Assembly: GCA_013115145.1 (NCBI GenBank)
Contig: JAAPAO010000023.1
Span: 62,001-126,000, forward strand
Direction of reading: 5' to 3'
Length of the DNA: 64,000 nucleotides
Origin: Perkinsus chesapeaki ATCC PRA-425
Taxonomy: Eukaryota; Protista; Perkinsozoa
Shown: piece after piece, positions 3,238 to 48,110 of the stretch
Position numbering within the stretch: the stretch's first letter is position 1
Layout of the letters: every line of letters starts with the position of its first letter
Made by a program: the position numbers and the translations under genes
Notes under the pieces: generated by a model
Seen by the model: the letters and a program-made list of their open reading frames with translations, nothing else
Told to the model about the DNA's origin: nothing
Database searches by the model: none

Positions 3238-6200
3238 ATGCCGACAAAGGAGGAGGGTACTAACTACCTGGACGGGCCGCATCATTTCATACCGTAAATT
3301 CCCCAGATACATACTCCGGATATGCCTTCTGCCCAACAGCTTGGCCGTGGCCTCTCAGCAGCGAGTCGGCGCTCGTGTTGAAAGCGTTATACGTATCCTA
3401 GATCAATCCACGCTGGCTCAGGTGCTCGAATCAACCTCTGCATATCTTTGATAGCGTATCTTAGGTTACACTATTACCTTCCTGTCATTCCCAGCCAATC
3501 ACCGATCTACAAGTTATACCGGAAACTGGTGGCCGAGGCCTGTAAGTTCTCTAATATACCGTTTAACTATAGCATTTTTAGGGTATCTTGTTCTCGAGAT
3601 GCCACTGCCAAGATTTGGGACCTACGAGCGGACCCCTCCTCAAATCCAGCAGCAAGCATATCCGTTAGTAATAATAATAAGGATGCCCAAGTGTTCGGAG
3701 CAAGTGTCAACAACAATAATGTCCTAGCTGTAAGCTGGATGGGCGGGGATCACTGGGAGGCTCATATAAGGTATATCTTATAGTAATACTTATTACTAGC
3801 GTTGTTTGATTTTATTTATAATATCTTTCAAGTGGTTTCGAATATGTAAGATTCGGCCGTTTACCAACCGTTCTCGTTGTGACGGTTATATCTAACAGTA
3901 TGTTTCGATTACCGTAATAAAACTGCTGCTACAGCGCGTGATGGAATGACCGATATCTCACTCTTCGTAGTTGAGGAATTGGTAACCTCAGTCATCGGCC
4001 TTGGATAACAAATTATGCACTACCCGAGAAAATACGGCCTTTTGCGTAACATTTCTAGCTTTGGGGGGAGCCGAATAGATTTGCTTACATTATGGTACTT
4101 GAAGGAGTCGGAATAAGAGAATAAGATTAGTTACTGTGGGGGAGGCCTATTATGGCTAGGAACTTACCAACGTGGCGAATATAACGAAGTATCAAACTGG
4201 ATCGGCTTTGTGCACATTTTTGGAAGGTGTAGAGAGATTTAGTTTAGCGGAGCGAAGGTGCTGTTTTATGACGTTTAATGTGCAGGTGGGATCCGACTCT
4301 GATGTTTTACTGTTTGATATGAAAGCTGGGAAAAAGAAGCCTTATTTTACGTATACTGATGCTCATATGGATATAGTCAATTGCGTGAGGTTCCATCCTA
4401 CAAAAGGGAATCTTTGCTTGACGGGAGGTAGATACGCGAGAGGTTAACTCGTGGGTTATTGTAGCTGTATCAGGTGAAGATACTCTAGTGAATGTACTTG
4501 ATGTAGCCGATCTTGTTAATGAGGATGACGGTCAAGCTCCGAAGGTTACAATAAGTGCGGAAGATTCGGTAAGGCATTTGGGAAATTGATGTTCATAGCG
4601 TAGAACGGACTTATGGAGGCCTTCTGGTAGTTATAGTATTCTTAGTGCTACCGATATGAAATAATATTGCTACGGGTACGCGGCACTCTTGGCTGTGAGA
4701 AGTTCGAGCATGTTGGGGGGGTGGTGTTCGAGTATGTCCCACCTTGTGATGAGTTGTTGTTAACAATGCTCTATCACCAATTAATGATCTACTGAGGTGT
4801 GCCGGAAAAACGTGATTTTTTCAATGACTGTATATATTTGTTTCGGAACTTCTGTGTGTACGGTCAATAGCTGGTGAAGTTAACATTTATCATCTCTACT
4901 TGCCACGTGTCAATCACGCTCAGATCGGACGAGCACCGAGTATCGTCATTCTTGGGCCTGATATTGATGAATTGATTTTGGAATGTATTGCAATTCAGGT
5001 GCGGTCCGTGTGCTCGGCTGGGAAACAGGGAGAACTAATAGTAGCATCTACTTGCACGGAGAAGTTACAAGTCTGGAATGCCATAACAGCGCAACGGTAG
5101 GTGGTAACATGCTGGATGCTTTTAAAAATGACGTGTGCCGGGATCGAACCGACGACCGAGTGAGAGCGTCAACGAAGGTGGTTGTTTCCAAGAATTATCA
5201 CTGTTGCATGGTTCGAAATGGAATCTAATATCGTTTTTGATTGCAGTAGCGATTAGTTATCTTTTAGATGTTTGGAGACTAGTGGCATAAGGGAGCACCC
5301 ACTCCTATGTGCAGGCTCCACTGAAGAGGACAGGCAGTTGGGCTATATCATTGATGCGCAATACGATGCTATTAATAATAGAATGTAGGTGGGAGAGGAA
5401 CACCAATCCTGCTAGGGGAAATGTTACTTTTGCTCTTGGAATCGACTTTTCACGCTTTTAACTATTGAGGGGCTTATCTCGGTGGGAGTTGGTGAATTTG
5501 TGGCAGACTACCTTGTTGCATAGGAAGGGCTTGAAGGTCGGAAGGTGAATAACTGGTTATAGTGTGCGGGAGGACCTCAATTTAAACCTCGGCCACGCAC
5601 ATGTATAGAAGAATTCCCGAAAAAGGAGCCAGATTGAATCATTATTTGGCAAATTGCTAGGGCACCACCATCACCTATATGTTGCATAAGATCAATCGGA
5701 AGCCGCCTCTCGATGGCTAAGTAGAGATCGGTACTGCAGTGGCTGCTGCTCACCATGTTGACTATGCCTTGGGAACATATACGATATTAGGATACTCCTT
5801 GAGCATCCTACCTTTGATGGTCGTAAATCCTTAACGCATTGCTGAGACTGCGCAGAATGGTAAAAGTGTTGCTCCTGTTGAAGTTGTTAAGGCGTTTCCA
5901 GTGGACCTATGGTTAGCGCTACATAGGCTACAGCCTGAATCAGGTTTATAATAGGAGGCTCTACCAACGGCACAGTAGTCTGCTGTGAGCTCCTGGACAC
6001 GGCAACTCTAACCACACATGGTGTCTTCCATACTGGTTTGGCAGATAAGGGCCATGAAGGGGTGGTGCGATCGGCTGTACTGGTAGGTTGGAGAGGGGCT
6101 TGCAGGCGTACTTAAGCTGAGCTTAGGATACCTCCGGAGGATCTGTCTTCACCGGTGGAGAGGACGGTGTCGTTGTTAGCTGGGGCCCTAATGCTGGGCA

Positions 6201-6334
6201 TACGGATCTAAGCGATCTGAAAGATGTATGTGCATGCGTGCATATGATTTCATACCGTATTTTTGTTTGATCAGGGTCGTACAGGCAGCAATAGAGCGTC
6301 TCGTGGGGCGTCTTCTGTCGTATCGCCTTACTAA
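3238..6334 (+). CDS. WDR89: WD40-repeat protein, WDR89-like (multi-exon; start approximate)
   Basis: Exons LPSCHSQPITDLQ, VSCSRDATAKIWDLR, VGSDSDVLLFDMK..AHMDIVNCVRFHP, EDTLVNVLDV, GHEGVVRSAVL|..VFTGGEDGVVVSW, ending SVVSPY* (TAA 6332-6334). Motif order matches my recollection of WDR89. Confidence 0.7.
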
Positions 6335-6510
6335 GGTAGCATTCCCACTCAACACTGTCTATGGAGTATTGCTAACGTTCCTCATTACCAACGTGCTTCT
6401 AATATGGAAAAACGGCTTGCGTGAAATCTTCGCAGTGCGGGAAGATACGCCTTCCGTGTCAGCGCTTTTATGGATATAATAGACTCGAGAACCTCCTAAC
6501 CCGCCTGCCG

Positions 6511-9460: not shown

Positions 9461-12261
9461 ATGTCTGATGCGCCCTCCTCTCCTCGGCCAGTGGTCCTTG
9501 GTACCTGCCCTGGTGAGGCCGCTCGGAGCTATCTGGCATGGCTGGGCCCACGGGCCACCGCTGCGGCTTATATTCTTCAAAATGAGCTCCAAGCTCAGGA
9601 CTTGCCTCGACCACCAGAGCACACTTGTGTGCGTACCGATCCGCACAAGCAAACGGTTGGCTCCACGCAAGAATTACTCACCTTTGACATGGACACCTTG
9701 CCCCGCGTCGGACCCGAGATCATTACCCTGCCTCCCTCAGTGCCTATTGCCGAGCATCATCATGAGCCTGACAGTTGGAGTTCGTGGGGCAGTAGGGCTT
9801 CTGTGTCCCATCCGGCCGTCTGTGAAGCCCATCTTCCTTCACCATCCCTGGACCCTCTGGTGGCGCCGACTATCTTGTTCCTGGTGTACGCCGCAGTGCT
9901 CAGCCGGATGTCCCAGGAAGAGTCGCCCAGCGCCGTGGCCGCTGCCTGCCTTGCTGAGGTTTACACTTATATTACCCGCAACGGCGCGCCCTGCTGTCGA
10001 CTTGCTAAAACTGTTCTGGGGGCTTGGAAAGGTGAGACGATATACTCGTTGGGTGGCGCTGTAACGATATACTACTTTTGCCAGGTGGATGGGGTTATTG
10101 CTGCTTTTGCGAGATGAAGAACCTTATCGTGTCCGCCGCTTTAAGCTTTCCTACAGAGTCGGCCCGCCTTGAAGTTGGCTCTATCACTCCGGAGGCAGAG
10201 GACGAAGCCTCACTGGTCGATGCCCCTTCGTCCCGCGCGAGTGTGATTGCCGGCAATGTTCCTATAGAGGCGGCCGAACCTGCGCCTGCTGCGCCCCCTC
10301 TGTCCGAAACCAAAGCGACAACGACGGAATTGCCTTCCACAGCATTTCGGCAGGATTGTGTGTTCTGTCCCCTAGGGGAGTCCATACTGGCAGAGCACGT
10401 AGCACTGTGCACCCTTGCACGCTTACAAGGCACTTTGCCTAAGAATAGCCTATCTAAGCTGGAACCAGTAGGAGATGTTGATAAGGGCTCCAATGCTCCG
10501 CCTAATTCCTCTCGACTCGATATCACTGCCAACAGGCCGAGATTTCAAAGTAGCCCGGAGCTCATCACTGCCTTTGACGCCCTACTCGTGCAAGAGGCAT
10601 TTCTAGCATCTCTGGAACGCCGAAATCGGTCGAGTCATCAACAGTGGCGTCGGCGCTCCAGTCGTATGAAGGCTCGACCCAGATCTGATATGATGCCGAC
10701 TCGCCCCCTGAGTAGCCCGGGGGTGGCGCCCAGGGCATATGTGCGGCCTTTCACACCCCATGACCAGCTCCCCTACAGCCTTTATGTGGAGAAGGTTGAA
10801 AATGACTTCATTGCTACCTTCTGCAAAAGTCCAAGGATTCTTCCTCCCCACACGGTCTCTCGGCTCGAGTCCAGCTCCCATATGCTCGCGCGGTACATCC
10901 TCCGCGACCTCTACTTCACCATCGGTATTATCTACGCCTTGGAGGGGGGTCGGTGGCCACACCCGCCGTCAGCTGAGGTCGGTCGGAAACCCAGCCCAGG
11001 AAGCCTGAGCGCTGTGACTTTTCGTCTGACCCGGATCTCTGAGCCTCGCCCTCGGTCCTTGGGATGCCAGACTGATCTAGCCGGGCTGACTGGCTCTATG
11101 ATAGATATTACCTTGGCCGCACAGTCGACGACCACCGCTGGTAGGAGTGAGGATGTGACCGTGAAGAGTAACGAGGCCCACCTGGTCATTGCCGACTCGA
11201 TGACCATTTCACTGCAGTGCATGGTCCACTCGAAGGACGCTGAGGAGAAGACGGTCCAGGCCTCACGGAAGGCTGGACATTGCAACAGCAACCAGAAGGC
11301 GGAGATGCCAGTGGTGGAGATGGTCTCCTCCGCGGTCCAGACGATGAGTCCTCGGCAGCGCCTCGAAGCTGGAACTTTCTGTGACTTGTCTAATATATCA
11401 GTTGTCCCTCCTGACGCAACCTCCAACACCGTAGTAAGTCGCACCCCAGCTGGCGGCAACAATCATTTCAAGAGCAATACGGTGATGGAGGATGATGCCA
11501 TGGATCTCACCGCAGCCCGACGGTGCTCTGTCGAATTCGTTGGCTACCTGATGGCCCGCTGTGCCTGCCGGATGATGGCGCGTTCCTCCCTGGATAGCCT
11601 TTTCGCCCGCATTGTCGCTCCCGCTCGGGGTACTCTCCCACGTGCCGAGCGCGTCACTGGGGGGAGCTCCGTGGGAATACAGTGTGTAGATGAGACTCAC
11701 TCGGACTCTACCGAGTTCGTTCCAGCTTATCTGACATCACCGTGCAACGTGGCCTGTCAGACTAACTCACCCCGCCCTAGCCATCTGAGGCTCTTGCTCC
11801 TCATGGCGGCCCAGCGAAGGCTACTCTCAAGTGGCGCCGTCGACAGGCTCCGCCCTGCTCCTGAGGAGGCACCTGCAAGCTGCGGAAGGCGCGGAGGCAG
11901 AAACCGCCAGCCACCGTCGTCGACACCATCAGTATCGAATACAGCGCCGCCCCCTGGCCTTGCTCCAGCGACCCCATGCTTGCTGTTCGAGACTTCGTCC
12001 TCGGTCGTCAGTCAGGAACTGACCTCTACGTATAAATCGGTCGCCACGACATTGCGTAGAAGTGAACCATCGATGCGGCAGGCGAGTCCTCGTCGTGGGT
12101 CGGCGATTGTTGGCTGTTCTCCCCGACGTTCTCTTTTACCCGCAAAGGCAGCGCGCAGAAGTCCATTATACCGGAGGGCATACTCGAGCGTGAAGCCACT
12201 GCGAGCCAAGCCCTCAGATGAACATCGTTACGAGCTGCGGTTTTCACCTACCATGTCCTAG
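9461..12261 (+). CDS. Two-exon orphan protein (~915 aa), Ser/Pro/Arg-rich, with Cys motifs
   Basis: A 53-nt GTGAGA..TTTTGCCAG intron (10032-10084) joins the 218-aa and 727-aa ORFs in frame (AWK-G-GWGYCCFCEMK). Contains C-x2-C-x9-H-x3-C (CVFCPLGESILAEHVALC). Confidence 0.7.
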
Positions 12262-13414: not shown

Positions 13415-14742
13415 TGCTCAGCACTGCTCCTCTATTAGGTTGATCGACGTTCATCCATTGCATCTACTGTGGACCCAGACGTTGTCTCTTGCTGCCCTCC
13501 CACAGGCTCTTCTTTGCTGGGCAGATCTCCTCCCTGTAAAGGCTCAAGAGCCGGTGTTATAGCGAACGGCAGTGGTAAGAATATTTGGCACATGAATGTG
13601 AGTAAAGTTGCTAGGTATATGTTGTCCCGCTCACACTAATGTTGAGGATGCTGGAGAAGGGCCATTCAATCCCTCTCTTGTGGGGTGTCATGCGGCCCTC
13701 CATGATGAATCTATTAAACTGCTGCACCGACAATCACCGAGAGGCAAGTGAGTTGTTATACTGTTGATGTTGTTAGTGTTGCTGCTGCTGTTGGTAGATT
13801 TCTCACCCCTTAAAAACTACCGAGAAGTCCGCTCTTCGTTCGCGAGGGTCCACATGTGACATGTGGTTCCCGCGCAGATTGTCTAATATAATTCTTTTTT
13901 GATACCATCATCAGATCAACACTCCTTTATCGGATTGCTGCTGTAACATGAACTGGTTCAGTCTTCTTGTTGTTTGGTCTACTTCTACTTCTTAAGCGTC
14001 CTCAACTCCTTGCATTGTCATGAACTATTACCTCTATCAGAATAATATAACTGGTCTCAATATTGATTGGCAGCAGCATCATCATTCACCATTACAGAGT
14101 ATTTAATACGGACTCAACTCATAGTCACCTCGTTGTCTCTTGGTCTTGGTCTACATCAAGTGGAGGGATGATGATTGGATTCTTGGTATTGGTTATGAAC
14201 TTTTCATATGTAAGGATCCTACATCAGCAGTATCGTGCCCGTTTTAGAATAAGATTGAAGAAGATCACTGTAGAGAATAACCGTCTTCACTGCTACAGTC
14301 TCTCTTCGCACTGCCAAATGTATTATTGACGATACTATTACAGAACGGTGAGTATTAGACTTTATTATTATCATATTTTCTTGCTACTGCTGCCAAAGGT
14401 CAGATCAAAACCTATCATTATCTGCTCTGGCTGGTATACCGGCAAACTGCATTCTACCGTGTACGACTTGTATATCTTGCCTCACGCTGTTGGCCTTGTC
14501 AGCGAGTTCTGTCACGAGACCTTGTCATCGGGACTACTAGTGATGCCGGTGTCTCGTTTATTACTGTGGCTTCTCTTCAAGTGCGCTGGCTCCTGCGGTT
14601 GTCGGCTGTTACGGGTATCATTGACGGTGCCACACAATACAATGACACAGCGAGAGGAATATCTATAATAGTAAGCGTCGATAGTAAGAGTATGTTGCGA
14701 GGATACCAGCAACATGGGAAAGTTGTTGCTGTCTCGAATCAC

Positions 14743-14769
14743 TATCATCATCATCATCATCATCATCAT
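14743..14769. repeat. (CAT)n microsatellite
   Basis: About 9 consecutive CAT units; source of the poly-His and poly-Met stretches in the track ORFs. Confidence 0.9.
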
Positions 14770-16309: not shown

Positions 16310-16477
16310 GCTAAGCTTGTAGGTAGCTTACCACATTGGCATACGGGCGTTCTTACCCACATATTGGTACTTTCTCACGGACGATTCTCGCGCTTTGCGT
16401 TCACTGGGTGAGAGTGACTTCCGGCCATAGTGAGGTCCTCTACGGCATCATTCGCAAAGGCTTACTAGTCTCAATAA

Positions 16478-19436: not shown

Positions 19437-20968
19437 ATGCTGTCGGTAATTCCGTCAATGATCAAGCAACAGCAGCAGCAGCCGAGAGGTTCATCTCCGG
19501 CCAGAGCCCTTAACCACACTCCGCCGACATCACCGTGCCTGTCACCATCTCGGCCTAGGCCTGCCGTATCTATCATGCGAGATGATTCTTCTCCCGATGA
19601 TTCCCACCATCAAGCTCATTCGTTTTTGCGGCGGGTTTGCCGGTGTAATAGTAGCGATGCCGCTATATACCTCAACACTATAAAGGAGGAGCGTCCCGCA
19701 ATGACGGGGAAGGTCCCGAGGTTCAGAAGCGCTTCAAACGCTGGCCAGTTTTGGTCACCATCGGTAAAGTACGACGATGTAGCCATGGACAGCCAAACGG
19801 AGAGCCCTGTGTCCCCTGAAACTGACACTGAGCGTTCCGTCACTGTAGCCAGTACAAGCAGGGACCTCGGACATAACAGTGCAATCTCCGGAGGATCATA
19901 CCTTCCTCAAAATGAGAGTCAGGCTAGCCTAGTTGCCATGGTTGACCAGAAGCAGCAACAACAGGTGTGTTGTGATGGACATGTAGCCGAACGATTGGAC
20001 GGTGAAGAGGCATTTTTGCAGGAGTTCGTTTTTGGATCTTCGGCATTCCAAGTAGGTCTCCGGTCTCAGCGACTTGTACCGATGATGCTGTCGACAGGTG
20101 GACTTTGTGAACACCATGACCCAGTCTCTTCTTGATAGGATCTCATCGGAGGAGATGGTAGCGTTCCCGGGTAACTTCCTGTCTCGGTCCGATTTTTACT
20201 ATTTTCCTATCAGATTTGCCGTCAGAGCTCCGCAGTGTCACTCGCTTCTACGCCCTACGAGCCCCGAGCATCTCCATACATGCATACCTAAAAAGAATGG
20301 AGAAGCATTTTCTGGTAGATGACCGAACTTCTTCGCTCCGCCGTTCACATTACCCTCTCAGTGCTCTCGTGAGTGTTATCTTTTGGCACTGATTTACCTG
20401 GACAGACTGTCCTCTAATTATTGGCAGTTCAGAATAACTCGCAGAAGCGTCCACAAGTAGGTCGATATTTCACCGCCATCGCGCCATTTAGTAGCCGCTT
20501 TAGATTTTTCCTCACTGCATTGGTAATCGCGGTGAAGTACTTTGACGATATCTATTACGACAATAAGTACTATGCCCATGTTGGAGGAGTTAGAGTGGCA
20601 GAGCTTGACACAATGGAACTAACATTTTTGCAGCTTCTAGGTAGGTTAGTTATCCCTTCTCTGGACCCTACCATTTGGGTTTCCTACATCTTTTGGCGAG
20701 GGAGTCCTCAGCGACGAAGAGCTTCTCTATAATATCCGTTCACTGGCGGATATCTCAAGACTGCTCTATTGTCTCGTGAAGTTAATTTTTATTGATGCGA
20801 CTGCGGGTCTCAATCTGGTGATAGTTGACCGTCTACTTGTGTTCAGATTGGCATTTATTCGTTACTGCTGACGAATTCACGCAGTGTGCAAAGAAGTTCC
20901 TTGTGACTGGTAGCGGCGTCGAGTATGCTATGACTACTGGCCCAACTCCTATGGACATCTGCCACTGA
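19437..20968 (+). CDS. P/U-type cyclin, copy D, with a long low-complexity N-terminal extension
   Basis: TRFYALRAPSISIHAYLKRMEKHF|..LALIYLDRL..SVHK|FFLTALVIAVKYFDDIYYDNKYYAHVGGVRVAELDTMELTFLQLL|DWHLFVTADEF..ICH* (TGA 20966-20968). The true start could lie upstream. Confidence 0.88.
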
Positions 20969-33346: not shown

Positions 33347-36300
33347 ATGAGGGATCACCACCACGGTGAGGAGGAAGAAGGAGGGCTTAGATCACCTGGC
33401 CAGGAGACGGTAGTAGCGAGTGTGGTAGCATGTGATGGTGGTGGTGGCAAGGAGTGCTTTCAGACCTCTAGTAGTGGATTCTCACAAAATATGGATATGG
33501 ACATCAATACGGTGGGAGTGTTCGGTAAGGCTGGAGCTCGCTCTTTTCGTGGATGACATCTTATTACTGTCCCTATCGGGATGGGTACTTCCATGACATC
33601 TTTGCAGTCCTTAGTTCCCTGTATAACCATAAGTGTTACGGTTTTCCCTCAAACCACTTGGGGTCTCTGAGGCTTGTTTACAAGGCTGTATGGACTTTTA
33701 CCAAGGCCTAACTATGGCCGCAATATTACTAATATATTTCGAAGCTCCATCTTTTAGTTTTTCGGGTTTACCTGGATTCGTTTTGTGTCTCAAACTATTA
33801 ACCTCTGCTCTCAATGTCACCCCTATTACTACTCCTTTCCCCCTTCAGACCCGAAACAGAGCAAGTTATCTGTACGGAAGATATCGGGTGCTAGTGACAT
33901 GCCTGATCATGTAGGTTGGTGACACTAGTAGTGCGTGTCATGGTCCATCTCGTCAGGTTACGGACTTCAGTTCATTGTCGAAGCCAGCGAAGATAGCGGC
34001 CTTGTGTGTGGAGAAAGTTCCTGCCTGGAAGGGGCGAGTTCATCCGGCTGATGTAGGAAGGAGCGATGAAGTTGCAGATTGGTTTGAAGTTGATCGATAA
34101 TTAATTTCCGAGGTTGCTTCCTTTTACTGAATACAGCCCGACGCAATGGAGTAGAAGAATCCGTATTTGTTAGCTAATGGTGCACGATATTGAGAATATG
34201 AAGATATTCGGGCTGTTCAATAAAGCGTTCCTGAAACTCAGGAACGTGCCTAGGAAGGGAAGTGCAACATTTGTGTTCATAAGACCGTGCCCAGGAACGG
34301 TCCAGGGAACGATCCCAGGAACGTCCTCCGGCACGTTCAAAAAACTTCAAGAACGATCCCAGGAACGTCCTCCGGCACGTTCAAAAAACTTCAAGAACGA
34401 TCCCAGGACCGTTCCTCGGCACGGCATTTTCAGGAACACTCCACACCGTTCCTGAGAATTTTCTGGCGCGTGACTTGAGCGCCGGCGTAACTGATTTGTC
34501 AGTTCCGGACACTCATCCTACCAGCGAAGTGAACTCTTTGAATATGACGATATTGAAAGCGAATAGTCGGTGCTTCGCTCCGCTAGGATTATTGTATTTT
34601 TAGGTTGAGATAAATCAACTATGTGAAGGCCTGTCCAACCAATTGTTTAGAGTGTCCTTGCCGAACCCTCGGGCAACCTCCTCAGCATCAGACAGCCCGA
34701 CGGATCAGGAGGAGCCAGTAGCGTTCACCAGAGTACTTTTTAGGTAGGCGGAGCGAAGTTTTGTTGTTCGATTTTTCGTCAGGATTTACGGTAAGGACGC
34801 GAAGTCGTTCTATGACCCTGTCTACGAATTGAAGGTCTTTAAGACGCTTTCACGGTATCGCATAGCACCGCAGTTGATTGCCTATGTAGGATGAGTTGTG
34901 GAGAGAGCGGTAGAAGATTCTTGGCGTTCTAGGGTGATGGTTGGCGCATAGAAGAATGGCATGCTTCGATTGCAGTGCCGACTAAGCTGCTCGGAAACCC
35001 GAGTATCTTTTGCCAGGTAGGAGCAGGAAAGATACGCGGAAGGTTGATAAAGGTGTATTCAGATCGCATCGCAGCTTGGTCGATTTCACAAGCTCGATCA
35101 GCGTCAGGACTTCCCAAGATCCTTCAGCACGGAGCCGGCTACTATCAAGCGATTGAGGTGACGAGATGGATGCGCTTCGCTCCGCTAAAGCATCTCGTTT
35201 TTAGGAGTTGGGCAGCTGAGGCCGAGAAAGTATCTTTTAAGGAGCCAGAACAGCGAAGGAAGCTCGAGCGGCTACATGTTGATAGAATGGTTGAAGAGGC
35301 TGGGTGAGCTGAGTTGTGGACAAAGGGGGGGTCTTGTAGGATTATATTTGCGGGAAAATCGGTATGAAGGAAATATAGAGGGACATCGATTGTGCTATGG
35401 CAGTATATTTGCATCATACTTCGTATTAGTTGAATTCCCGCAATGATGACTTATTTTGAGGCAATTTTCGGGAGAAAACTGACCGTTAGGCGGCTGGATG
35501 GATAAACCCCTAATCGCCGGGAGTCGTAAGCGAGTAGTCGTTTGCTTGTTCGCCGCCGCCGCCGCCGTCTGCCCGAGTGAATTTGGCGTTGGGGTGGGCC
35601 AGTCGGTTTGTCATGAGTGGTTTGCTGTTTGTAATAATTGTTGATGATTTAGATGGCTGATCGACTATCTTACCCAGAATCAAGAGGACATAGTAAAAGG
35701 GCAAGGCATGGATATAGTGTTCTCTCATAATGATGTACCAACATGGCTGCTACCTGTAGTAGAGCTGTTGCTTGCTTGTGTAGGTGCAAGAAAACAATAT
35801 ACTTCAAACGCAGTATGGTCTCAGACTTATTGACTTTGAATATGCACATTATAATTATCAAGCTTATGATATTGCCAATCTCTTCTGTGAGTTCACTATG
35901 GACTATACCGAGAAGTAGGCATCACGGTGGAGCTGTGGTGAAGGGGCGGCGGCGGCCCGGAGGTTGACAGTCTTGCTCATCGGCTCCCTCGTTAATCCCA
36001 TAATCGCTGGGATTCCCTTTCCCCCGGAAACGTGCCACGTGGAGCTATATATTCCTGTACTGTAATGTAGTTTGTTTCAGGCACTACCCGTTCTTCGCTA
36101 CGGATCTGGCAGCATATCCGGATGAGCAAAAGCAGCGGATGTTCTTGAGCGTGTATCTTTCCGAGTAGGTTGGCTCCACTGGGGTTGGGGTGAGGTTGCA
36201 TCGCACCGCCGCCGATTTAGGTATTTGGAAACACCTATTTTCCCTGATAACGACCTTTATATTCTTCCTTTAATGAAGAATGTCTCCAAGTTTGCGTTGG

Positions 36301-36895
36301 CCTCCCATCTGCTTTGGGGTCTTTGGAGCGTCATCCGAGCACCTCAGGCACCGACATATGACGACTTTGATTTTCTTGTGTAAGTTGAGCTCTGAGGTAT
36401 CAAGCGAGGTTCAAGCTCAGATACGCGAAGTTCCGTTTCGACTCTTATTTTCGGATGAAGAACATTATTCTATCTGAGGACAAGGAGGCTACTGAAAAGC
36501 ATGATGCCGAGTTGCTGAGGAAGCAGTTGCAATTAGAGCTTCAAGAACAGAGAAATAGCAATAGTGGAAATGTACTGACGAGGGATAGAACCGAGGGTCT
36601 TTAAATTGATAGATGAGCGCTCTCCCCGTTGAGCTATTAAGACGGTCTTTTCAGATACATCCGAAGGATGTGCGGCGGTACATTGGTTTCTTCCGTGGCA
36701 TAGAAATCGGCGCGGTGGCGCTGTCCATTGGCCTTTCCCTCGGCACGGTGTTTGGAATCCTTAATTATCGTAATGGTAGAAATTTATCATAAAATACCTC
36801 AAGTGAGATATGTTAATCTCCTTGTAAGATTTACCATTGTAGAACAGCAGTTTCAGCGTCGTTCGCAGTGCTCATCTTCCTACTTTCAGTTGTGA
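33347..36895 (+). CDS. Choline/ethanolamine kinase (multi-exon), possibly with a C-terminal TM segment
   Basis: EINQLCEGLSNQLFRV, VLF|RIYG, ELKVFKTLSRYRIAPQL, GWRIEEW, IVFSHND|QENNIL (Brenner motif), LRLIDFEYAHYNYQAYDIANLFCEF, ASHLLWGLWS, YAKFRFDSY. Confidence 0.92.
34227..34456. repeat. Fold-back / MITE-like structure inside the 551-nt intron (34053-34603)
   Basis: 19-bp inverted arms 34285-34303 and 34406-34424 (18/19 match) enclose a 44-bp direct repeat (starts 34307, 34351, partial 34395). GTTCCTGA/TCAGGAAC hairpins lie at both outer ends. Confidence 0.8.
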
Positions 36896-36971
36896 TTAAA
36901 AATGTGTTGAGTGTCGGGGCTGGGGTTCGAACCGGGGACCTCGGAAGTTGGTTGCATTATTTTTTCTCGTT

Positions 36972-39900
36972 ATGGCTGAACAGCATCAGCAAAATGGTGT
37001 AACGCCACCGAACATGCGAGTGCGGCAAAATCCATTCGCGAGTCAGCAGAATGGGGGGCAGGCTGGATGGTACCGTCGCTGGGATTCGAACCCGGGTCAT
37101 CGGATGCGGAGTTTTCGTAGGTACCAGCAACCGCAGCCACAGGCGGCATCCTCAGGGCAGCCGCCCTTGAAGCCTCAAGCGCCGCCTGCGGTGCACGCTC
37201 CTGCTCCTGCAGGGGGGGTAACGGCTCCGTGGAATAGAGTGCATGCCCCCGGTACGGAGAGCAGTGGTGCGGTGGGGTCAGGTAGGATGGGGATTGATGA
37301 TTGGTTTTGGTACTTGCAACTTAGGTCACACTGGTGGGTATACTAGTAGCGGAGTCGAGAGTCCATGGGGAGCATCTGGGGTAGGTCCAATCCAGGCTGC
37401 TGCTGCTGCTGAGAGAAATGGTGGAGTCATTCAGGGCGTTCCATCGGGGATGAGTCGAGTTCACGCTAGCGGTGGCGGCCAGGACCATTACCATCAGCAG
37501 CAACAACAACCCCAATCGATACACTCACCATTCGGCAGTGCGACCACGGGCTCGCCGTTCACACAGAGCGACCAGCAGAGCGCAGCGAAGCATTACCAAC
37601 CTCAACAACAACAACAGGAGCATCATTCGAATGCTCAAGGTGAATAGGTGATGATGGAGACTGGGAGGAAGGGGTGTCGGTCAGGCCGGATGGAACAGCA
37701 GCAGCATCAGACAAGTCGGCAGCAACAGCAGTCTGGTGGGGGCTTTGCAGATCAACTGGTGGGAGCAGCATTCAATGCAGCGGCAAAGACAGCATTCGGA
37801 GGAAGTGGCCAAGGCGGTCAAGGTAATAGGGGAGGGTACGTCTGAGTATCTCAAAGATGTCATCACTTGCGCACAGTTATATAATGTAAAGAATCCTAGT
37901 TCTTCTTGGTTGATTGTTCTGAGGCACGTGTGTTTTATAATTTCATATGGTCAGCTTGCGGGAGGCGTTGATCTTGACGTCGTGTAGATCTCTAGTCACC
38001 CCATAGACCAGTTGAACTTGCGGGGTCTCGGCGAACTTGGGGAGACTTGTGCTGTTATTCTTGGCTCTCGCGGGCTTGCGCTGCAAATCCCTCCCCTATG
38101 GATGGCCGGGCTGCCCTTATTACGGCAATGGTTGCTTAGGTAGTGGTAGCGGCAACGATGAGATGATGGGGGCTGTTATGAGCCAGGTAACGATGGACGG
38201 AGAAAGGTCCAATGCCTTCCGAGTCAGGTCGGGCAGAATTTGTACCAACAGGCGGAGCAGTCAGGATGGACCAAATTCGTGCCTTGGGGGTTTGACAGTA
38301 AGTTAGAGCAGCATTAGCGCCGCTGATGGGTGTGGGAGGCAGAGTTGGATCAGGTTTGCGACCGTACTTTAACATCACGCACAGTTACGTGAAGTGGAAA
38401 TGCCTGTTTTTAATGATACCGTTTGTGAAGTAAGAGGCTGCTGATGGGCGTTGTTGAGCGTCATTTTGGTCAGGCGGCTGTTCCAACCGGGGAAGAGCCA
38501 GAGGCACTATAGTGTGGATAATGAGATGGATAACGTAAGCAACCTCGGGAGAATCTTAGCGAGTTTGGTGGCTCAGTTGCAAGCTCCGACTCAGCGGACC
38601 GGAGACCCTAACGAGGGAGTAGCGCTGCGATTTGTAATAGAGTCAGTGATGTCTGGCTGGTGGCGATCTCATCATGGCAGGTTCCGGACCGCCGACCAGA
38701 TATGTACATCCCTTTGATGAGTTTTATTACATATGTGTTGGCGTACGCAATCATAAAGGTGAGGATCGTGGGGAGCGAAGTTGAGATAACTTGTCAGCCT
38801 TCTTTAACCCAACTCAACGGTTTATTGGTCGACACGTTTGCCTAGAAATGTTGGCGGTGCCTTGTTGGATTTCCTTAATACTATCAAAGACATATGTGAA
38901 AAATAATATATTGTTATAGTATAATGAAGAATATCTCCAGTAGTATCATTATGCTTGTTTTGTGATCATGATTATACTTGTATTACAAAAATGAATGGTT
39001 AATGATTTACCGCAAGATGGCCGGCCCAATGGAAGTCTCATGTGGGTATCCTATTTAGGGTGCTGCTGATGACGGTTCTTTCCATCCGGATGTCCTCTAT
39101 GACACTGCTACCTTTGCCGCGGTAAGCTCGATGTTGTTATCCCTGTTTGTTACCTCCACCTCCTCCATTCCCAGGTACTATCAGTAATAGAATTGGTGCT
39201 AGCCAGAGGAGCTGGATACTTCGCTAATATGACCAGGTAAGAGTGGCGGCACGTATAGGAGTTACGATCTATGTAATGGCGGCTGGGGCGCTCCTCCCTC
39301 CGTCTCTTCCGTGATTATTGTTGCATTACTCTGACAGTTGGTGAAATGCATCAATTTTGTTGGGTGCGTATTAGCGGGTAAAAATTAAGAGCATTCAGTA
39401 AGCGTGCTGTGGTGCTTTATGAAACGTAAGTAGTCATTTGATGACCTAATAAGAAGTGGGCTGGGGTCAACGCAGCGGCAAGTAGTCTGTGTTATGCTAA
39501 TCACTGCTGCATACTGTCAGTTTGCGGCTGTTGGACTTGGTATGTGTTATCGGTTACAAGTACTTCCACTTGTCGGTCTACTGCATTACCCGGATACTCT
39601 TCTCCAGCAAGATCACAACGGTAATAAGCCCGGCAGTTCATCAATGGTAATGACTTGGACTTATCAGCCTTACTTCTGGTGGGGGTTGCTCGGTTACCTC
39701 TCCCTAGCAGCAGCCTATGCATGCTTGGTGTCGCTGCAGTACTTTACAACGTAAGTCATATGACCAGACTGGGGGGATTCAAAGGTGCTATTACTATTAG
39801 ATATAAGACGGCGATGCAAGCCCACTTGGAGGTCTCGGGGACGCATACGAGCGTGCTTGTTAAGTACGTGGTGTTTGCTATAGCTCTAGCGCAGGTAATA

Positions 39901-40188
39901 AGCATTCGGGTAGGAGCGACGGAAGAGATAGGGGGTGCTCGGTGACGGGTGGGAAATGCGATCCTGAGAAAGTGTGGTAGAAAAGGTGTTCGCAATGAAA
40001 AGTGGAAGCATCATGGTTGCCTGACAGAGTGGCATTGGTGAGACGAGTGAATAGAGAGTTGATTGACGTTGATTTGCTGACGTGCAACTCATCGATAGCC
40101 TCCTGGTCTCAGACGGTAGCCTTCTTTATGTTGTTAGATACCATTATGCTGGTTATTGGCACCATCACTGAACACCACATCAATGTGA
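36972..40188 (+). CDS. YIF1: YIF1/HRF1-family ER-Golgi membrane protein with a Q/G-rich N-terminus
   Basis: LRPYFNITHSYVKWK, RPDMYIPLMSFITYVLAYAI, FHPDVL, WWGLLGYLSLAAAY, YVVFAIALAQ|IPLCWLL match YIF1 motifs. Confidence 0.8.
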
Positions 40189-40378: not shown

Positions 40379-42217
40379 ATGGCAACTGAGGACTTCATTC
40401 GGATTCAAGAGGAATGCAGCAGGATGGTTCTGAGAGAGCAGATGGGTGGCCGACGTCCAATAGCTGGTACGAAAAATGTGAAACATGAAACGCTTCGCTC
40501 CGCTAAGCTTTTCTTGTCAGGTGAATACACTTGCCACTCCTGTACAGGCATGTCCCAAGAAGCTATGAATAAGTTGATTGCCGCCTTGCCGTATCGGAGA
40601 GCTAGTAGAAGTCACCGAAGAGCGGTATCTGACCCTGGCACTGGGGGAAGGGGACAGCAGCTTTGTGCAACACAAGCCTGGTCGGGGCCGGTGAGCCAGG
40701 GTGCGGCAACTGGTCGCTGTGGTGATGATGATGGTTCCTCCTCCTCTGGTTTGTCAACTGGTCAGCTTGGATACATCACTGGCCTCGAGGAGCCTCGAAA
40801 TGGATGGCCGAGTTCTTCAAGAAGTGTCTCCGAGGTGGGCTGCGGCTGCTGCTGGTGTGATGCCAAGCTTTGCTGTTGCTCAGTGTCATAGTGAATGGAG
40901 ATTCACTTATGGGCCGGTGAGCTATATCACCGCGGGAGATTCCAGCGAGTGCAGTAGTAATGGCGGCTGTCCTGTGGTGGGGAGGGATGCTGGGAGGTTG
41001 GAGGCAGCAGATAGGTTGCACTTGAAAGTAAGGCACGGGGGCGTCACTGTTGTTGTACTGGTTATGTCGGACAGGTTCATCGTATGGGGCAGGAGCCGTC
41101 GGAGGTTGAGGATATCAGCAGCGTGGACTCTGAACGGGCGGCGAATGTGTCGCTGACACCGTTGGTATCGCCGAGGCTGCCAGATGAGGAGGGGAGTTGT
41201 GGGAAAGTTGGTATGCGTGCAGAGATATGTGTAAAGTACCGTGGCGTACCGTCGGCGAGCCTTGCTAGAGCGGGACGCCGAGCGAAGACGGCTTCTGACC
41301 AGAAGCCTACGAGCCGGGCAAAGAAGTTGGTAGGTAACGATCTTAGGGCTGTCAGGGGAACTGGGCTTGACAAGAGAGAACGGACAGCAGCGGTGGCAAA
41401 GGCGGCACCGTGTGAGGTACTGAAGCCGGCAATGAAGGCCGCACCGTGTGAGGTACTGAAGCCGGCAGTGAAGGCGGCACCGTGTGAGGTACTGAAGCCG
41501 GCAGTGACGGAGGTTATGAGGCCTGTTGGTCCTCGGAAGATGGCACCTGTCAATGGCTCGATGTCGGATACAGAGGTGGTTGTCAAGACTGTTGCAAGGC
41601 ACTATCTTCAACGACGATCAGCATCTGTGACGCCTAGGGTAGCTTTAAGGGAGCCGAAGAGGGTACGAAAGAAGGTGAGGTCGAGTGTTGGTAAGGTTGA
41701 GGAAAGATCTGCGGCCCTGCCGCCTAGACGGGGAGGGTCTGGGTATTCCGAGGCGCGTCGGAAGGTGCTTCAGCGGACGAGAGAGAGGTATCTTTTGAAG
41801 CAGGCAGCGTTTAAGTTGTGGGTGGAGGTTAAGCGTGATCTTAGAGCTAGAAAAGATACTGAGAGAGCCACTAGGGGGATTACTGGGCAAGTGCCGGTGA
41901 CTAAGCCTCGTGATGTGTGCCACACACGGACGTCGCTCCTGCGCAACTCGGCGAAGCTGCTGGTCTCGTCGACCGAAGAGAGGAGTCCTCTCCCCAGCCC
42001 TGCGGTCAGGCGGCCACCGGCATCTGTGAAGTTGCCTAAGGCTTGCAGGTTCTGTGATGAGCCTCGCTCGGTGAGTGATGTTCGAGCAAGGTATGCCGAG
42101 TGGGTTAGTAGGGAGGCTGAGGCCCGGGTAATGCCGTGGAGGGCTGGCATGAATTTTAGTCTGGACGGGTATCTTAAGGAATACACCGTTAAAGCTGATC
42201 ATGGTTCATCCTCTTGA
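40379..42217 (+). CDS. Hypothetical basic, low-complexity protein (multi-exon)
   Basis: ATG 40379, intron 40468-40520, then a 377-aa terminal ORF. No family recognised; internal exon structure uncertain. Confidence 0.55.
41399..41507 (+). repeat. 36-bp x3 coding tandem repeat (KAAPCEVLKPAx)
   Basis: GGC(G/C)GCACCGTGTGAGGTACTGAAGCCGGCA at 41401, 41437 and 41473. Confidence 0.95.
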
Positions 42218-42306: not shown

Positions 42307-45086
42307 ATGACTACTCTCCGCCCCAACATCATCCTTCTCAAGCAGGGCACTGATTCCTCTCAAGGTAAGCAACCAGCGCTAGTGCTGCCACTCCTGATCC
42401 AGCAGCAGCAGCGGTAGCTGTCATTATAGCACTTATGTTCTTTCCTGCTACATTCCTTTAAGAACACGACTACTTCACCGAGCATGGCGATTCTAATACC
42501 TCGTGGCTGTATCGAAGGTGTAGTATATTTATCTGGCAGGTATCCCTCAGATCATTTCCAACATCAACGCCTGTGAGGTTATCGCGGACATAGTCCGTAC
42601 TACGCTGGGGCCACGAGGGATGGATAAGCTCATCCACTCGGAGAGTCGGGAGCCGACAATTACTAACGATGGCGCTACTGTCATGAAGCTGCTCAATATC
42701 AGTCATCCCGCCGCCAGGCTCATGTCTGATATCTCCAAGGCTCAAGATGATGAGGTGAGTTATTGGTCAAAGTGCTGGTAGGGATGGCGGGATCAGGTCG
42801 GAGATGGCACTACGTCTGTTGTCTTGTTCGCTGCTGAGCTTTTGAAAGAGGCGAAGATGTTCTTGGAGGAAGGCCTGCCTCCTCGGGCCCTTCTTAAGGG
42901 GTATCGCAGGGCCCTTCAGTTGGCTTTGGGTAGGTTATGGATGAGTAATGGTGGTGACGATAGTGGTGACAGATAAACTGGAGGAGTTGGCGGTCGATTT
43001 GACGGCCAAGGCGCCAGAGGAGAAAAGGGAGATGTTGGTTAAGTGCGCCGAGACGACACTCAACAGCAAATTAGTTAGCGGCCAGAAGAAGTAGGATAAC
43101 CTCGGCGAGGGGGGTGATGGAAATCTCTTTGTCAGATTCTTTTCGGATATGGTCGTGTCGGCAGTGTTGATGCTGGATCAGGATTCATTGCCTGTGAACA
43201 TGATCGGCTTCAAAAAGGTCCCTGGTGGATCGTTGACTGAGTCTAGACTGGTCGATGGTGTTGCTTTTAAGAAGACTTTCTCTTATGCTGGTAATAATAA
43301 AGGAATCCTGTCGGAGGGTTGCGCAGCAGATGGGGCCATTGGGGCCGGCGGGTGAAGTATTTACCCTTTCCGTAGTGGAAGTTAACCAGCTTCGATTCGG
43401 TCACCTCCCCTAATGGTACCGTGTCGTCGTTGCCTGTATTGTTATTGTCAGGTTTCGAGCAGCAGCCTAAGTACTTCAAGAACCCAAAGATCCTGCTCCT
43501 CAACCTCGAGCTGGAGTTGAAGGCCGAGAAGGATAACGCTGAGGTAGGCTGGGGCCATTGGAGGCCTAGGCGATGCTGATCGATTGAACACATTGGGACT
43601 CCGAATCTCCACGTTGATTTTTGCTCTTCAAACGAGGTTCTTTCAGGTTCGTATTTCCAACCCCGATGAGTACCAGGAGATAGTGGATGCCGAGTGGAAC
43701 GTCATTTACGAGAAGCTCGATAACATTGCCAAGAGCGGCGCGCAAGTTGTCCTGTCTCGCCTTCCTATTGGAGATCTAGCCACACAGTACTTTGCTGATC
43801 GTAACATTTTCTGCGCCGGCAGGGTCGACCAGGACGATATGAACCGCACGCTGCTGGTAGTGGTACCTTCGGTGGCGTTTTGCCTTCATGGTGATTCAGG
43901 CCGTCGGTGGATCTATTCAAACTACTGTGAACGGATTGACTGATGATGTCCTTGGTACATGTGGCAGCTTTGAGGAGGTTCAGATTGGCAACGAACGTTA
44001 TAACATTTTCCACCAGTGCCTCCAGTCGAAGAGCGGTAAGTCCGAGCTTGGGTAGTCGAGTGAATTTGATGGGAGCTGCCTCTCTCGGGCTCGGGAACGT
44101 CCACATCGCAGCAGATCATGTTTTTGTCCTTGTTCAGCGACCATCATCCTGCGTGGCGGTGCGGCCCAATTCATTGAAGAGGCCGAACGTTCCCTCCACG
44201 ACGCTGTTATGATTGTTAGGAGGGCCCTTAAGTGCTCCAAGGTGGGACGACGACGGTTAAGGAGGGGGCCTTGTTTAATATTATATATCAGATTGTTGGC
44301 GGTGGCGGTGCTATAGAGCTAGAGCTGTCTCGTTACCTTCGGGAATACTCTAGGACTTGCACCGGTGCTGATCAGGCTGTTATCAACTATTATGCGAGGT
44401 AAGCGAGAGGGAATACTAGGTGTTACCCAACCCAGGAGAGAGGAAGTCTCTTCTTGCACCTGGAACGTGTTTCCTATCAAACTTTCTATTGTACCTTTGC
44501 GCCTGGAGATTCTCTATCGAGCTTTGTATTCTGCCTACTTGGTCTTTTATCTCCCTTCTGTTTGAGGAATGCGCTATCTCTTCAGAGCCCTCGAGTGCAT
44601 CCCTCGTACTCTTGCCCGTAATAGCGGCGCCGACGCCACGGATCTACTGAACAAGCTGCGATACAAGCATGCTGAAGGTAAGCCAATTCTGTGACGCGGA
44701 TTGAGATGGTGGCGTCACAGGCTTGTCTGGTCGGTGGTACGGCGTTGATTGCTACAACTGCGATATTACCAACACGGTTGACAACTTCATTTGGGAGCCT
44801 GTAGTCGTGAAGAGGAACGCATTGGGCGCAGCCACAGAGGTAGGGGGTAGGTGAGCAGGATTTGAGGAGAGAGCGGTATGGGTTTAGGCAGCCTGCATGA
44901 TCCTCAGTATTGATGAGACGGTCACTAACCCCAAGTCGGAACAGCCGGTAAGGAAAATTGTAAACGTGAATCGCTTCGCTCCGCTAAACCCACTTTGTTC
45001 AGGGTGGTAAGGGCAAGGGAGGCATGCCCATGGGCAAAGGAATGGGCCGTGGCATGATGGGCGGCAAAGGGATGGGTCGAAGATAA
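42307..45086 (+). CDS. CCT7: T-complex protein 1 subunit eta (CCT7)
   Basis: [20 protein letters not shown]|..[54 protein letters not shown]|[41 protein letters not shown]-rich tail; TAA 45084-45086. Confidence 0.97.
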
Positions 45087-45286
45087 ATAAACGTTAGGAG
45101 CGAGCCGACGTGAAGGCTACTACTAGAACGTATTTAGACGACGAGTCCGTCGATTAGGACTGTGATTAGGATGGTAGTGGCCAACAAATACCTTTTAAAA
45201 GTGATGACGATCATCTAGGATGGTTTTCTGCTGACTTTGGTGTTGAATTCAATGTCACTAAAGGGAGGGTCTAGCAGTTTGTGAGA

Positions 45287-48110
45287 ATGTCCTCGGAAGC
45301 ACCACCACCAACAGGGGCAGGGGCAGGAGCAGAGTCTTCTGTTGTGGAAGGTGTGCCGGCGGCATATTTCACCGAACCGCCATTCGAGGCATTCTCGATG
45401 TATGGTGCGGTGAAGCTGGATGAGTATATAAGAGAGCTGGGAGAGGAGTATTGGAAGTATCGGGTAGTAGGGCACCAGAAGTCTGGATGGACCACACTCG
45501 GCCATTGCTAGTCTTCGGTCGCTGGTGGAGCGTTCTTGCGATGCTGTGGAAGTTGTTAAGTCCCATTTCGCTCCTCTCTTTCGAACACGTGAGCCTAGGA
45601 AGGAGTTTCCCTGAATTCTCACCGTACGGAACTTGTGAGTGCTGCACTATTGAATCACCACCGTGTCACCACTAGGTATCGTCTAGTAATAATAATCTCT
45701 CGGGTATATCGAGATGGAAGCTGCCCCCGCCGGTGAAGACGATGGCACCGAGCGTGCAGCCAGTGGAGGAAGAGGAGGTTGAGGAAGGTAGCGAGCCTTG
45801 GTATTCAGGACTCGACTGCGTGTCAGCTCCAACTGCTACAACAACAGTGGTGGCCTCGCCCACCTCTGAGGAGGACAGCAGTGCTGCGGAGCAGGTGAAG
45901 CAGGCGGATCTACCTCGCAGACTGGTCCGACCGAAAAAATGCTTCCTCCACAAAAAGCCGAGGCCGCATACTTGTGCGAAATGCCGGAAGTATGCGGAGG
46001 AGATGGAAGAGTTTAATAGGAGTCTTATCGAGATGGCAGGTAGGCCGGTGACGTCGGCTGGCAATGGGAGGGTGCGAGGATATCAGACCCCTCAAAACAA
46101 CCAGTCAGAGATTCAACATCGTTGGAAGGGTCTGGTGGAGGAGAGGAGGAAGGTGTTGATGTTGATGGCAGCGGAGCCTTGATATTGGTCAACCAAGGAC
46201 CGCTGTATGGCCTCTACCCGACACTGATGCAGAATATTTGTTCATCTGAGTGAGTACGACGGATACCTCTCTGATCTTGATGTGGTTGGTAGTTACTATA
46301 AGGAGGGGCTTGGAGGGATAGGAACGGTGGAGGAGGTCGTAGAGGAGGTGGAGAAATCTGCGAATCACGCGGAGCCGTAGGCGGAGCGAAGCGGCGATTA
46401 GCATTATCTGTGGACTAGGTACAACGTTGGTGCGTTGAACATGCCGTCAACACTGTTTTGTTGCCTTTATAAATTATGTAAGATTTTGATAAATCTATCG
46501 GAGTGAGATTTGGAGAGTTTCAGGCACATTGGGGCCTAGTCCGGCAGATTTGCGACATATGTTGGGTAGGGGAAAGAGCCCGTAAGAGTATCTTTGTTGG
46601 GTATGAAGTGCACGGTTGAAGCTTAGATACGTAGTGTGTCTTGGACTCCTCTACCTGCGATGTGTGAGCAAGCCCAGCAAGTTATGGACATGGTTCTATC
46701 CCATCCTTTTCAACACCACTGTAGCCCCTCTTTTCTCGACGGTAGCCGTGGGGATGTCCGATTTAGGTCTTCCATCCGGAGCAAGTGATAGGAGAGGTCG
46801 AGGCCGAACCGATGACCCTCGGCCGCTATGCTGAGTTGCTGCTGCTCACCCACAAATACTTCACAGTCAATCTCAACAGGTTGGAATGTATCTACCTCAC
46901 AAGTCGCTGATGTCGTTCAGGTTGCCTGAATCAGCCCTGCAATCGTTTGGAGTTCGGTGCATCCTATTGGACACGGAGGATTGCCGCAGTAGAGCTGCTG
47001 GCCATCCTGAGAATGCCGACCAACTCAGTGTTGTTGGTACATATGTAAGCATGACTTCTTTGATTGTAGTGGAGGACCTAAATGCCAGGTGTTTGCTCGT
47101 AGTGAGGACTCAGGAACATGGGATTTGGGGCAGATAGTGCCGGGTGGAGACGCCAGCCTTGGAATGGTGGAGGTACCTTTGGGGGAGGGAGGCGCTCCAG
47201 CTCCAATGTTCGGGGCCGCTCTAGTAGCGTTATAGTGAGTGACGCTGAAGCATTTATGTTATAGGCAGTAGTTATGTTATTATCGGATTGGCAGGGAGGG
47301 CAGGGTTATGAATGCCAATCTGCGACACTACTGCGAAGTGAACTGATGAGGAGAAACCAGCACTTGCCCAATTTTTCTGTAGGATTTAACTATTGGTTTG
47401 AAATGGTGTAGGCGAATGCTATATCGGTCGTATTATTATTACAACTAGTTTATATCGAGCTGATGCTTGATAGCAGTCTTCATTGGCGACTGCCCAGGTT
47501 CGGACGTCAGAGACTGAGACCAGGTTGGTCCATTGGTCGACCCTACGAATGTGTATGGATGTAGCGGCGGCCCGGAGAGCAGCGGATGCGGTGGCCTTTA
47601 CTAAGGAGGATGGTGAGGAATTCGGCAAATAGGAGGGTTCGAAGTGTGTTTCCTTAGATGCAGCAAGAGCTCGTAGACGGGCACTTCTAGTCTGGCGGCA
47701 ACAGCAGAGGGCATTTGCGGAGGAGAGAGCATTTAGAGTGTCCGCTGGATGGCAGAGCCGAGGAGTTACTGATGATGTAGGTCTCGATAGGGAGATACGG
47801 AAGCCTTCAGACTTGAATAACATTGCGGGTTAGACTTGGTAGAATGATTAGAACCGAAACGCCCGAACTTTCCTTAGAACTGAAATTTCCGAAGCCTTGG
47901 GGGGACTCGCAGAAAGGCGCTCGTGAGCTTGTTGATCGGAAAATGTAACCTAGGACCTTTGGAAGGGACGTAATGAAGATTGGCAATGATCTGTTGATCT
48001 CGTGGCAGATACATGAGGAGGAGTTGGAGCAGTTGCCAACGGCAGAAGGGCAGGAGGAGGAGAGTGAGGAAAGTGCCCCCAAGAAACGCCGTGTTGTCTC
48101 TAAAGAGTAA
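45287..48110 (+). CDS. PRPF38B: Pre-mRNA splicing factor PRP38B-like (3' extent uncertain)
   Basis: LMQNICSSE|YYKE..VEEVVEEV..HAEP|YNVG..PSTLFCCLYKL|..YVVCLGLLYLRCVSKPSKLWTWF matches the PRP38B core. The N-terminus has C-x2-H..C-x2-C. Exons after ~46800 are tentative. Confidence 0.75.

Follow-up and report, generated by a model that had tools for sequence, protein, structure and literature searches.

Introns as short as 40-55 nt are commonly regarded as spacers that carry splice signals at either end. Several described systems bear on the question whether such introns can hold more than that. In the reduced spliceosomal systems of Trichomonas and Giardia, the introns share a 12-nt motif at the branch/3' region, which occurs in one orientation, takes in both branch point and 3' splice site, and is found in nearly all introns. 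In plants, intron-borne DNA motifs boost transcription (intron-mediated enhancement), the signal being degenerate and close to the promoter. Introners that are DNA transposons occur in Micromonas and Aureococcus. They were used here for comparison, as were the repeated non-canonical introns of Amoebophrya (PMC7789003). The DNA studied is a stretch of 64,000 nt of the shellfish parasite Perkinsus chesapeaki ATCC PRA-425 (assembly GCA_013115145.1, contig JAAPAO010000023.1, positions 62,001 to 126,000), hereafter called the window. In agreement with this, one of its encoded proteins is identical to a protein annotated on that contig. An initial annotation of the window had pointed to an 11-nt word, CTTCGCTCCGC, that recurs in introns of unrelated genes, and had proposed that it is either a relic of the terminal inverted repeats (TIRs) of an introner-like element or a splicing enhancer. 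The comparison of the window with sister lineages shows that the motif is an old selected signal in tiny introns and not the scar of a recent intron-making element.

Recurrence of the word in introns of the window

The word was counted together with its reverse complement over the 64-kb window. Eight exact copies were present, compared with a mean of 0.02 and a maximum of 1 in dinucleotide shuffles, which bears out the reported recurrence in unrelated genes. When triplet and simple repeats were set aside, CTTCGCTCCGC was the commonest 11-mer of the window. A search that allowed one mismatch yielded three extra sites, which is approximately the chance level. After alignment of the copies in one orientation, most of them proved to be preceded by G and followed by T or C. 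This implies that the conserved unit is about 12-13 nt long and can be written (G)CTTCGCTCCGC(Y). Read in the sense of the transcript, five copies have the C-rich form CUUCGCUCCGC and three the G-rich form GCGGAGCGAAG (Table 1).

All eight copies lie within spliceosomal introns. This had been claimed before, and it was confirmed for each copy by RNA contigs, by conserved exon flanks or by annotated genes. The RNA contigs stem from two runs that carry the same species label as the window DNA. In them, eight choline kinase introns have been removed by splicing, including the three that contain the motif. The other five motif-bearing GT..AG intervals measure 42-59 nt. Three of them (copies 40493, 44974 and 46381) have exon flanks that are conserved with P. 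olseni, and the introns of copies 4247 and 20331 were inferred inside annotated plus-strand genes. The motif is found from the first intron to the last intron of genes.

Table 1. Copies of the word in the window, their introns and their counterparts in the P. olseni locus L001 (see below)
Feature	Position	Strand	Intron and gene	Sense in transcript	Motif end to intron end (nt)	P. olseni counterpart
motif	4247..4257	-	59-nt inferred intron 4227-4285, WD40 (WDR89-like) gene on + strand	G-rich, GCGGAGCGAAG	28	
motif	20331..20341	+	47-nt inferred intron 20315-20361, PHO80-type cyclin gene (+ strand)	C-rich, CUUCGCUCCGC	20	
motif	34573..34583	+	551-nt intron 34053-34603, choline kinase (RNA contig)	C-rich	20	CATCGCTCCGC (L001:5283), one mismatch, intron 51 nt
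motif	34748..34758	-	39-nt intron 34744-34782, choline kinase; starts GTAGGCGGAGCGAAG	G-rich		exact (L001:5481)
motif	35175..35185	+	47-nt intron 35158-35204, choline kinase	C-rich		exact (L001:5898)
motif	40493..40503	+	54-nt first intron 40467-40520, gene without known family	C-rich		19 nt in common, TGAAACGCTTCGCTCCGCT (L001:10119-10137)
motif	44974..44984	+	55-nt last intron 44948-45002, CCT7	C-rich		exact (L001:14239)
motif	46381..46391	-	42-nt intron 46377-46418, PRP38; starts GTAGGCGGAGCGAAG	G-rich		exact (L001:15904)
extended core, about 34 nt	40472..40505	+	depth-based copy estimate			

Conservation in sister lineages

A protein search with the long exon 41084-42217 led to a P. olseni locus (L001) on a 78-kb contig. 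This locus is collinear with window positions 28096-54073, at a coding identity of about 70-77%. All six motif copies of the collinear block have the motif in the orthologous P. olseni intron in unchanged orientation, five of them exactly and one with a single mismatch; 65 of the 66 motif letters are identical between the window and P. olseni. Near copy 40493, P. olseni also keeps AAGCTTTT, past a one-letter insertion. The third, Perkinsus-like lineage is about as distant and is represented by one short Logan contig of run SRR12548988 (L003), which keeps the exact motif in the last CCT7 intron (L003:4246; 1 of 1). Absence of the motif introns at orthologous positions of sister species had been named as a test. 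All six testable introns are present with the motif in P. olseni. The partial copy noted earlier at 38770 did not hold up in the same way, as it has no counterpart in P. olseni. No exact motif copy was found in L001 beyond the orthologous introns, nor was any copy present in two other P. olseni loci (L007 and L008) or in a second P. chesapeaki locus (L002).

The remaining sequence of the introns behaves differently from the motif. Five motif-free choline kinase introns share words of 5-7 nt with their orthologues, and non-orthologous pairs fall in the same range, whereas the motif introns share 12-19 nt with their P. olseni orthologues. By a rough pairing of the region 29.3-50 kb, about 50 position-conserved introns were found between the window and P. 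olseni, of which six (about 12%) carry the motif; this pairing was a filtered automatic one in which a few false pairs remain and to which three motif introns were added by hand. Nearly all of the other approximately 45 pairs share 4-8 nt, the exceptions being words of 9, 10 and 11 nt (real or candidate) and one of 16 nt that was a false call. Among the approximately 50 shared introns of the collinear block neither the motif nor a motif-bearing intron was gained or lost. When exact matches that stand alone on the collinear diagonal were searched for separately, the motif sites again emerged as the recurrent conserved islands. Two other islands with unconserved flanks are shared exactly with P. 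olseni: ACTCGTGATGTTAGTT at 29829-29844 (L001:1806-1821) and AAATACCTTTTAA at 45186-45198, just downstream of CCT7 (L001:14457-14469).

The presence of the motif in orthologous introns of the sister lineages indicates that the word, like the introns that hold it, was there before the sampled Perkinsus lineages separated. The word is under purifying selection, while the rest of the intron is scrambled. The proposal of a functional intron element was therefore sound as far as selection on the 11-mer is concerned; a role as splicing enhancer is at most putative. As the motif is short, one could think of chance or of a functionless by-product of base composition. This is practically negligible as an explanation and was ruled out by the count of eight copies where 0.02 are expected, together with the exact retention of the word in orthologous introns with scrambled interiors.

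Origin of the motif introns and the extended 34-nt version

The suggestion that the word represents relic TIRs of an introner-like element did not survive the comparison. The motif introns are shared in 6 of 6 cases with P. olseni and in 1 of 1 with the third lineage, and neither TIRs nor target-site duplications (TSDs) were found at any copy, intron 34053-34603 being the only one with a 5' look-alike. In age and in conservation of position the motif introns do not differ from their neighbours, which refutes their recent creation. A recent introner origin was thus rejected, both on the lack of gains and losses and on the 51-nt length in P. olseni of the only TIR-like intron.

This intron, 34053-34603, deserves separate treatment. 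It measures 551 nt in the window versus 51 nt in P. olseni, where it starts with GTACTACC and lacks the 5' look-alike. At its donor (34053-34071) a G-rich look-alike, GTAGGAAGGAGCGATGAAG, is situated that has no match in P. olseni. The degenerate 5' copy described in the initial annotation is therefore present in the sequence, but it is not ancestral: since the 51-nt orthologue is without it, it belongs to sequence that only P. chesapeaki has. Approximately 500 nt of the intron (34080-34560) are specific to the P. chesapeaki lineage. They contain three 44-nt tandem repeats (34307-34438) and a 30-nt inverted repeat (34285-34314 and 34395-34424), and may be a small hairpin-forming insertion. In another long intron a look-alike of the G-rich word, GTAGGAGCGACGGAAG, is found near the donor at 39910-39925. 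It is likewise unmatched in P. olseni, where the orthologous intron contains, in the opposite orientation, a copy with one mismatch (L001:9716).

At copy 40493 a longer version of the word was encountered. In the DNA contigs of two runs a pile-up is confined to positions 40467-40509, where the depth is 1032 and 2185 compared with baselines of 83 and 74. The piled-up pieces have unrelated flanks and differ by 1-5 letters, some of them showing one mismatch in 35 nt. From the excess contig depth it was estimated that about 50-150 genome copies of this 34-nt version exist with a likeness of at least 90%. The CCT7 intron 44948-45002 is alike to 40467-40520 at 21 of the 27 letters upstream of the core, whereas the CCT7 orthologues of P. 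olseni and L003 are not. One P. chesapeaki contig from elsewhere holds two 34-nt copies that follow each other head to tail and are separated by 10 letters (GTCAAGCCCT). The flanks of the motif look species-specific, TAAA being seen at three copies in P. chesapeaki and TGTAA at two in P. olseni. The 34-nt family may consist of a longer site that is selected in one lineage, or it may result from gene conversion or from an element that is still moving.

Taken with the occurrence of the word in both orientations, these properties of the 34-nt version and its flanks speak for an introner-like element that is still or was recently mobile, or for gene conversion among dispersed copies, and the 11-mer would then be the part that the spreading machinery needs. 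We consider this improbable. No turnover of motif introns was seen among the shared introns since a split that was long enough ago to scramble neutral intron sequence, no TIR or TSD accompanies the copies, and the sole TIR-like intron is explained by the insertion of about 500 nt in the P. chesapeaki lineage.

Possible readers of the word and comparison with known systems

Tentatively, we favour the possibility that the word is an ancient docking site in tiny introns that functions in either orientation, is probably read as DNA and was introduced by an ancient insertion burst. The word (G)CTTCGCTCCGC(Y) is older than the lineage split and has been held letter-perfect in tiny introns by purifying selection. 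It would serve as docking site for a putative sequence-specific reader that accepts both orientations, most simply a protein on double-stranded DNA, as TFIIIC is on the B-box remnants of tRNA genes. An ancient burst of a short inserted element would have brought the word into introns. Such a burst would account for the single copy per intron, for the two orientations and for the fact that some flanks are shared.

The position of the motif with respect to the splice signals was compared between species, for which 15 copies from P. chesapeaki, P. olseni and L003 were available. Both orientation classes are conserved in P. olseni, and hence the word has no single fixed orientation relative to the transcript. 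Its place inside the intron shifts between species. It had been stated that the motif abuts the donor, and two P. chesapeaki introns (34744-34782 and 46377-46418) do begin with GTAGGCGGAGCGAAG, which is GTAGG plus the motif. In P. olseni, however, the same copies are found 25 nt inside the donor of a 50-nt intron and 22 nt inside the donor, respectively. A placement at the branch point had also been put forward. In four introns the motif is indeed followed by TAA or TAG and ends 17-20 nt from the last base of the intron, but the TAA is not kept: what follows the C-rich copies in P. olseni or L003 is TGTAA, TGAAG, CGTCT or TGTGG. The trailing TAA was therefore rejected as branch point.

A structural explanation was also considered. 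RNA folds of seven motif introns were not more stable than those of shuffled sequences (z-scores of -2.4 to +1.3) and did not differ from those of three control introns. GCUU...AAGC stems can be formed in two or three copies only, and a shared RNA hairpin was rejected. As DNA, d(GCGAAGC) forms a mini-hairpin. Since most copies retain the flanking G, this heptamer is complete in 11 of the 15; the conserved unit is, however, longer than the hairpin. Nearest-neighbour folding gave no structure for GCGAAGC, but this method is blind to the d(GCGAAGC) mini-hairpin.

Several observations weigh against a docking site on DNA. The motif ends 14-28 nt upstream of the 3' splice site in all 15 copies, including that in the 551-nt intron, which would also suit an element that acts in RNA close to the branch site. 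Furthermore, the copies are distributed per intron. From the annotation, the first 23 kb of the window were estimated to comprise about 48% exon, 35% intron and 16% intergenic DNA; with intron at 35% versus 16% intergenic, the finding that eight of eight copies are intronic and not intergenic is only marginal (about 0.05). Seven of the eight copies, however, reside in introns shorter than 60 nt (39-59 nt), and the intron of the eighth was ancestrally 51 nt. Since tiny introns make up about one-third of the intronic DNA (rough P of 0.002), the copies follow the number of introns rather than that of non-coding bases, and this is not predicted by a generic DNA site without an added story of its origin. 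The approximately 50-150 near-identical 34-nt copies hint at recent spread or gene conversion. The word was tried as a B box and rejected, as its best register agrees by eye with 7 of the 10 specified positions of GGTTCGAANCC, and A58 is replaced. The DNA-binding protein is hypothetical. Finally, the cross-species counts derive from a single syntenic locus of a sister species plus a short contig of the third lineage. Neither covers sites 4247 and 20331; a word search for their orthologues gave none, and an exhaustive search returned only the window's own protein.

The link of the copies with introns and their distance from the 3' splice site would be explained if the word acted at the RNA level in the splicing of tiny introns. 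Its place would then be the U2 anchoring zone, either just upstream of the branch point or overlapping with it, and it would be recognized by a splicing factor or by pairing with a small nuclear RNA (snRNA). Downstream of the C-rich copies, TAA, TGA or TAG-like sequences are candidates for the branch point. In both P. olseni introns with the G-rich form no A is present between the motif and the final CAG, which means that the branch A would have to be located in GCGAAGC or upstream. In addition, the splicing of the three choline kinase introns in the RNA contigs is consistent with such an element. We regard this as the main rival, albeit an unlikely one. The two forms of the word are exact reverse complements of each other and have both been conserved, for which a single reader that binds RNA does not account. 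Where introns measure 39-59 nt, almost all of the free interior is situated 14-31 nt from the 3' end, and the distance of the motif therefore says little. Neither the following TAA nor the position next to the donor is conserved, and the motif is found in only about 12% of the introns. The complementarity of the motif to the universal 5' end of U2, a general consensus rather than a Perkinsus snRNA, amounts to only 5-6 bp and also argues against an RNA element. Mimicry of the U2 5' end or the U6 3' end was rejected as no more than a resemblance. A paper on spliced-leader (SL) RNA (PMC3101222) contained no match to the motif.

Remnants of tRNA genes also occur in the window. Antisense remnants of tRNA 3' halves (T-arm with B box plus acceptor strand) are present at 36911-36945, 37075-37110 and 5128-5160, in non-coding stretches of plus-strand genes. 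The B boxes at 36923 and 37082 are conserved at the orthologous places of P. olseni (L001:7353 and 7532), and remnant 36911-36945 forms a 27-nt island at 93% identity with this species. Conserved B boxes in neighbouring introns thus offer a local precedent for a DNA site that is used in either orientation. A sub-threshold tRNA-like match (21 bits, E 1.6) lies near these remnants at 36571-36643 on the minus strand. An intact tRNA-Pro(AGG) gene is located at 59631-59702 and was the only ARAGORN hit.

The same remnants raise the question whether the word itself could be a retained fragment of a small-RNA gene, derived from the D-arm/A-box region of a tRNA or from the 5' end of an snRNA. TAGCGGAG agrees with the A-box consensus TRGCNNAGTGG over the first 8 positions of the latter, and GGCGGAGCGAAGCG resembles GGCGCAGCGGAAGCG, the consensus of the initiator tRNA D-arm. 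As an A box the word was nevertheless rejected, the match being weak. The T and R positions of the A box are not kept in P. olseni, three copies of which read CAGCGGAG. No acceptor stem, anticodon arm or B box is found at the expected distance, and by eye the flanks form no tRNA stems. The resemblance to a B box is likewise limited to 7 of 10 positions. Neither Rfam, at gathering thresholds or at E<=10, nor ARAGORN found anything at the motif introns. A small-RNA origin of the word is thus very improbable.

A wider interpretation, which we hold to be rather doubtful, is that the tiny introns of Perkinsus carry a small set of invariant words that can be used in either orientation, the 12-mer in about one in eight introns and B boxes in others. 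Together these would constitute a layer of genome signals that is embedded in introns and read on DNA, in which the 34-nt version would be kept uniform in P. chesapeaki by ongoing copying or conversion at existing sites. If such a layer exists, it could have a role in chromosome organization or co-transcriptional control, and in combination with the uniformity of the 34-nt version it would amount to a new way of intron retention and a new kind of intron-homing repeat.

Some observations concern the surrounding genes. L003 was compared with window positions 43134-54103. In L003 a GSIII gene lies about 2 kb from CCT7, and the PRP38 and mitochondrial-carrier genes, which are located between CCT7 and GSIII in P. 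chesapeaki and P. olseni, are missing from that place. At least three GSIII genes exist in P. chesapeaki. Two of them are located in the window (51755-58509), and the third, on JAAPAO010000998.1 (L002), has a nucleotide identity of about 67%. In P. olseni the annotation apparently fuses neighbouring genes (L001 genes 10001-11848 and 14570-18902): its 'Protein yif1b' matches the uncharacterized gene downstream of YIF1, and one model has PRP38 as well as mitochondrial-carrier domains.

In the literature searched, the motif occurred only in unrelated primers, and no account of introners or intron motifs in Perkinsus was present. The word is a conserved intronic cis-element without earlier description in that literature. 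A metagenome scan with a motif 21-mer yielded two contigs, both of which consist of ordinary bacterial-looking coding sequence and are therefore chance matches. About 12% of the tiny introns hold an invariant word, in both orientations, that has persisted while the intron sequence around it was completely replaced. Should the word be read on DNA, the tiny introns of this compact parasite genome would offer a protected place to regulatory or architectural sites, and this would go some way towards explaining why such introns persist. If it is read on RNA, it would be a new kind of signal for the recognition of very short introns. The sequence is short, defined and testable, Perkinsus can be cultured and P. 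marinus can be transfected.

How does the word compare with the systems mentioned at the outset? Like introners, it is one sequence found in short introns of unrelated genes, in both orientations and with longer near-identical copies. In contrast to introners, it is without TIRs or TSDs and its introns are not lineage-specific gains. Moreover, only 11-13 nt are kept while the remainder decays, which is the signature of selection on a site and not of recent copying. The motif introns also differ from fungal introner-like elements in that they lack an unusually stable whole-intron fold. With the intron motif of Trichomonas and Giardia the word has in common that it is long, invariant and near the 3' end of short introns, but in Perkinsus it occurs in both orientations, at a variable distance and in about 12% of the introns. 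As in intron-mediated enhancement of plants, a short intron motif may act on DNA and not in splicing; the Perkinsus word is, however, invariant and occurs from the first to the last intron. Extra TFIIIC sites, i.e. isolated B boxes, differ from it in that the motif is not a B box and has no tRNA-like context, and its reader is only putative. They resemble it in being 11-nt words that are used in either orientation and remain exact across deep divergence while their surroundings decay. They also share with it the location inside tiny introns, where the B boxes at 36923 and 37082 behave in the same way as the word.

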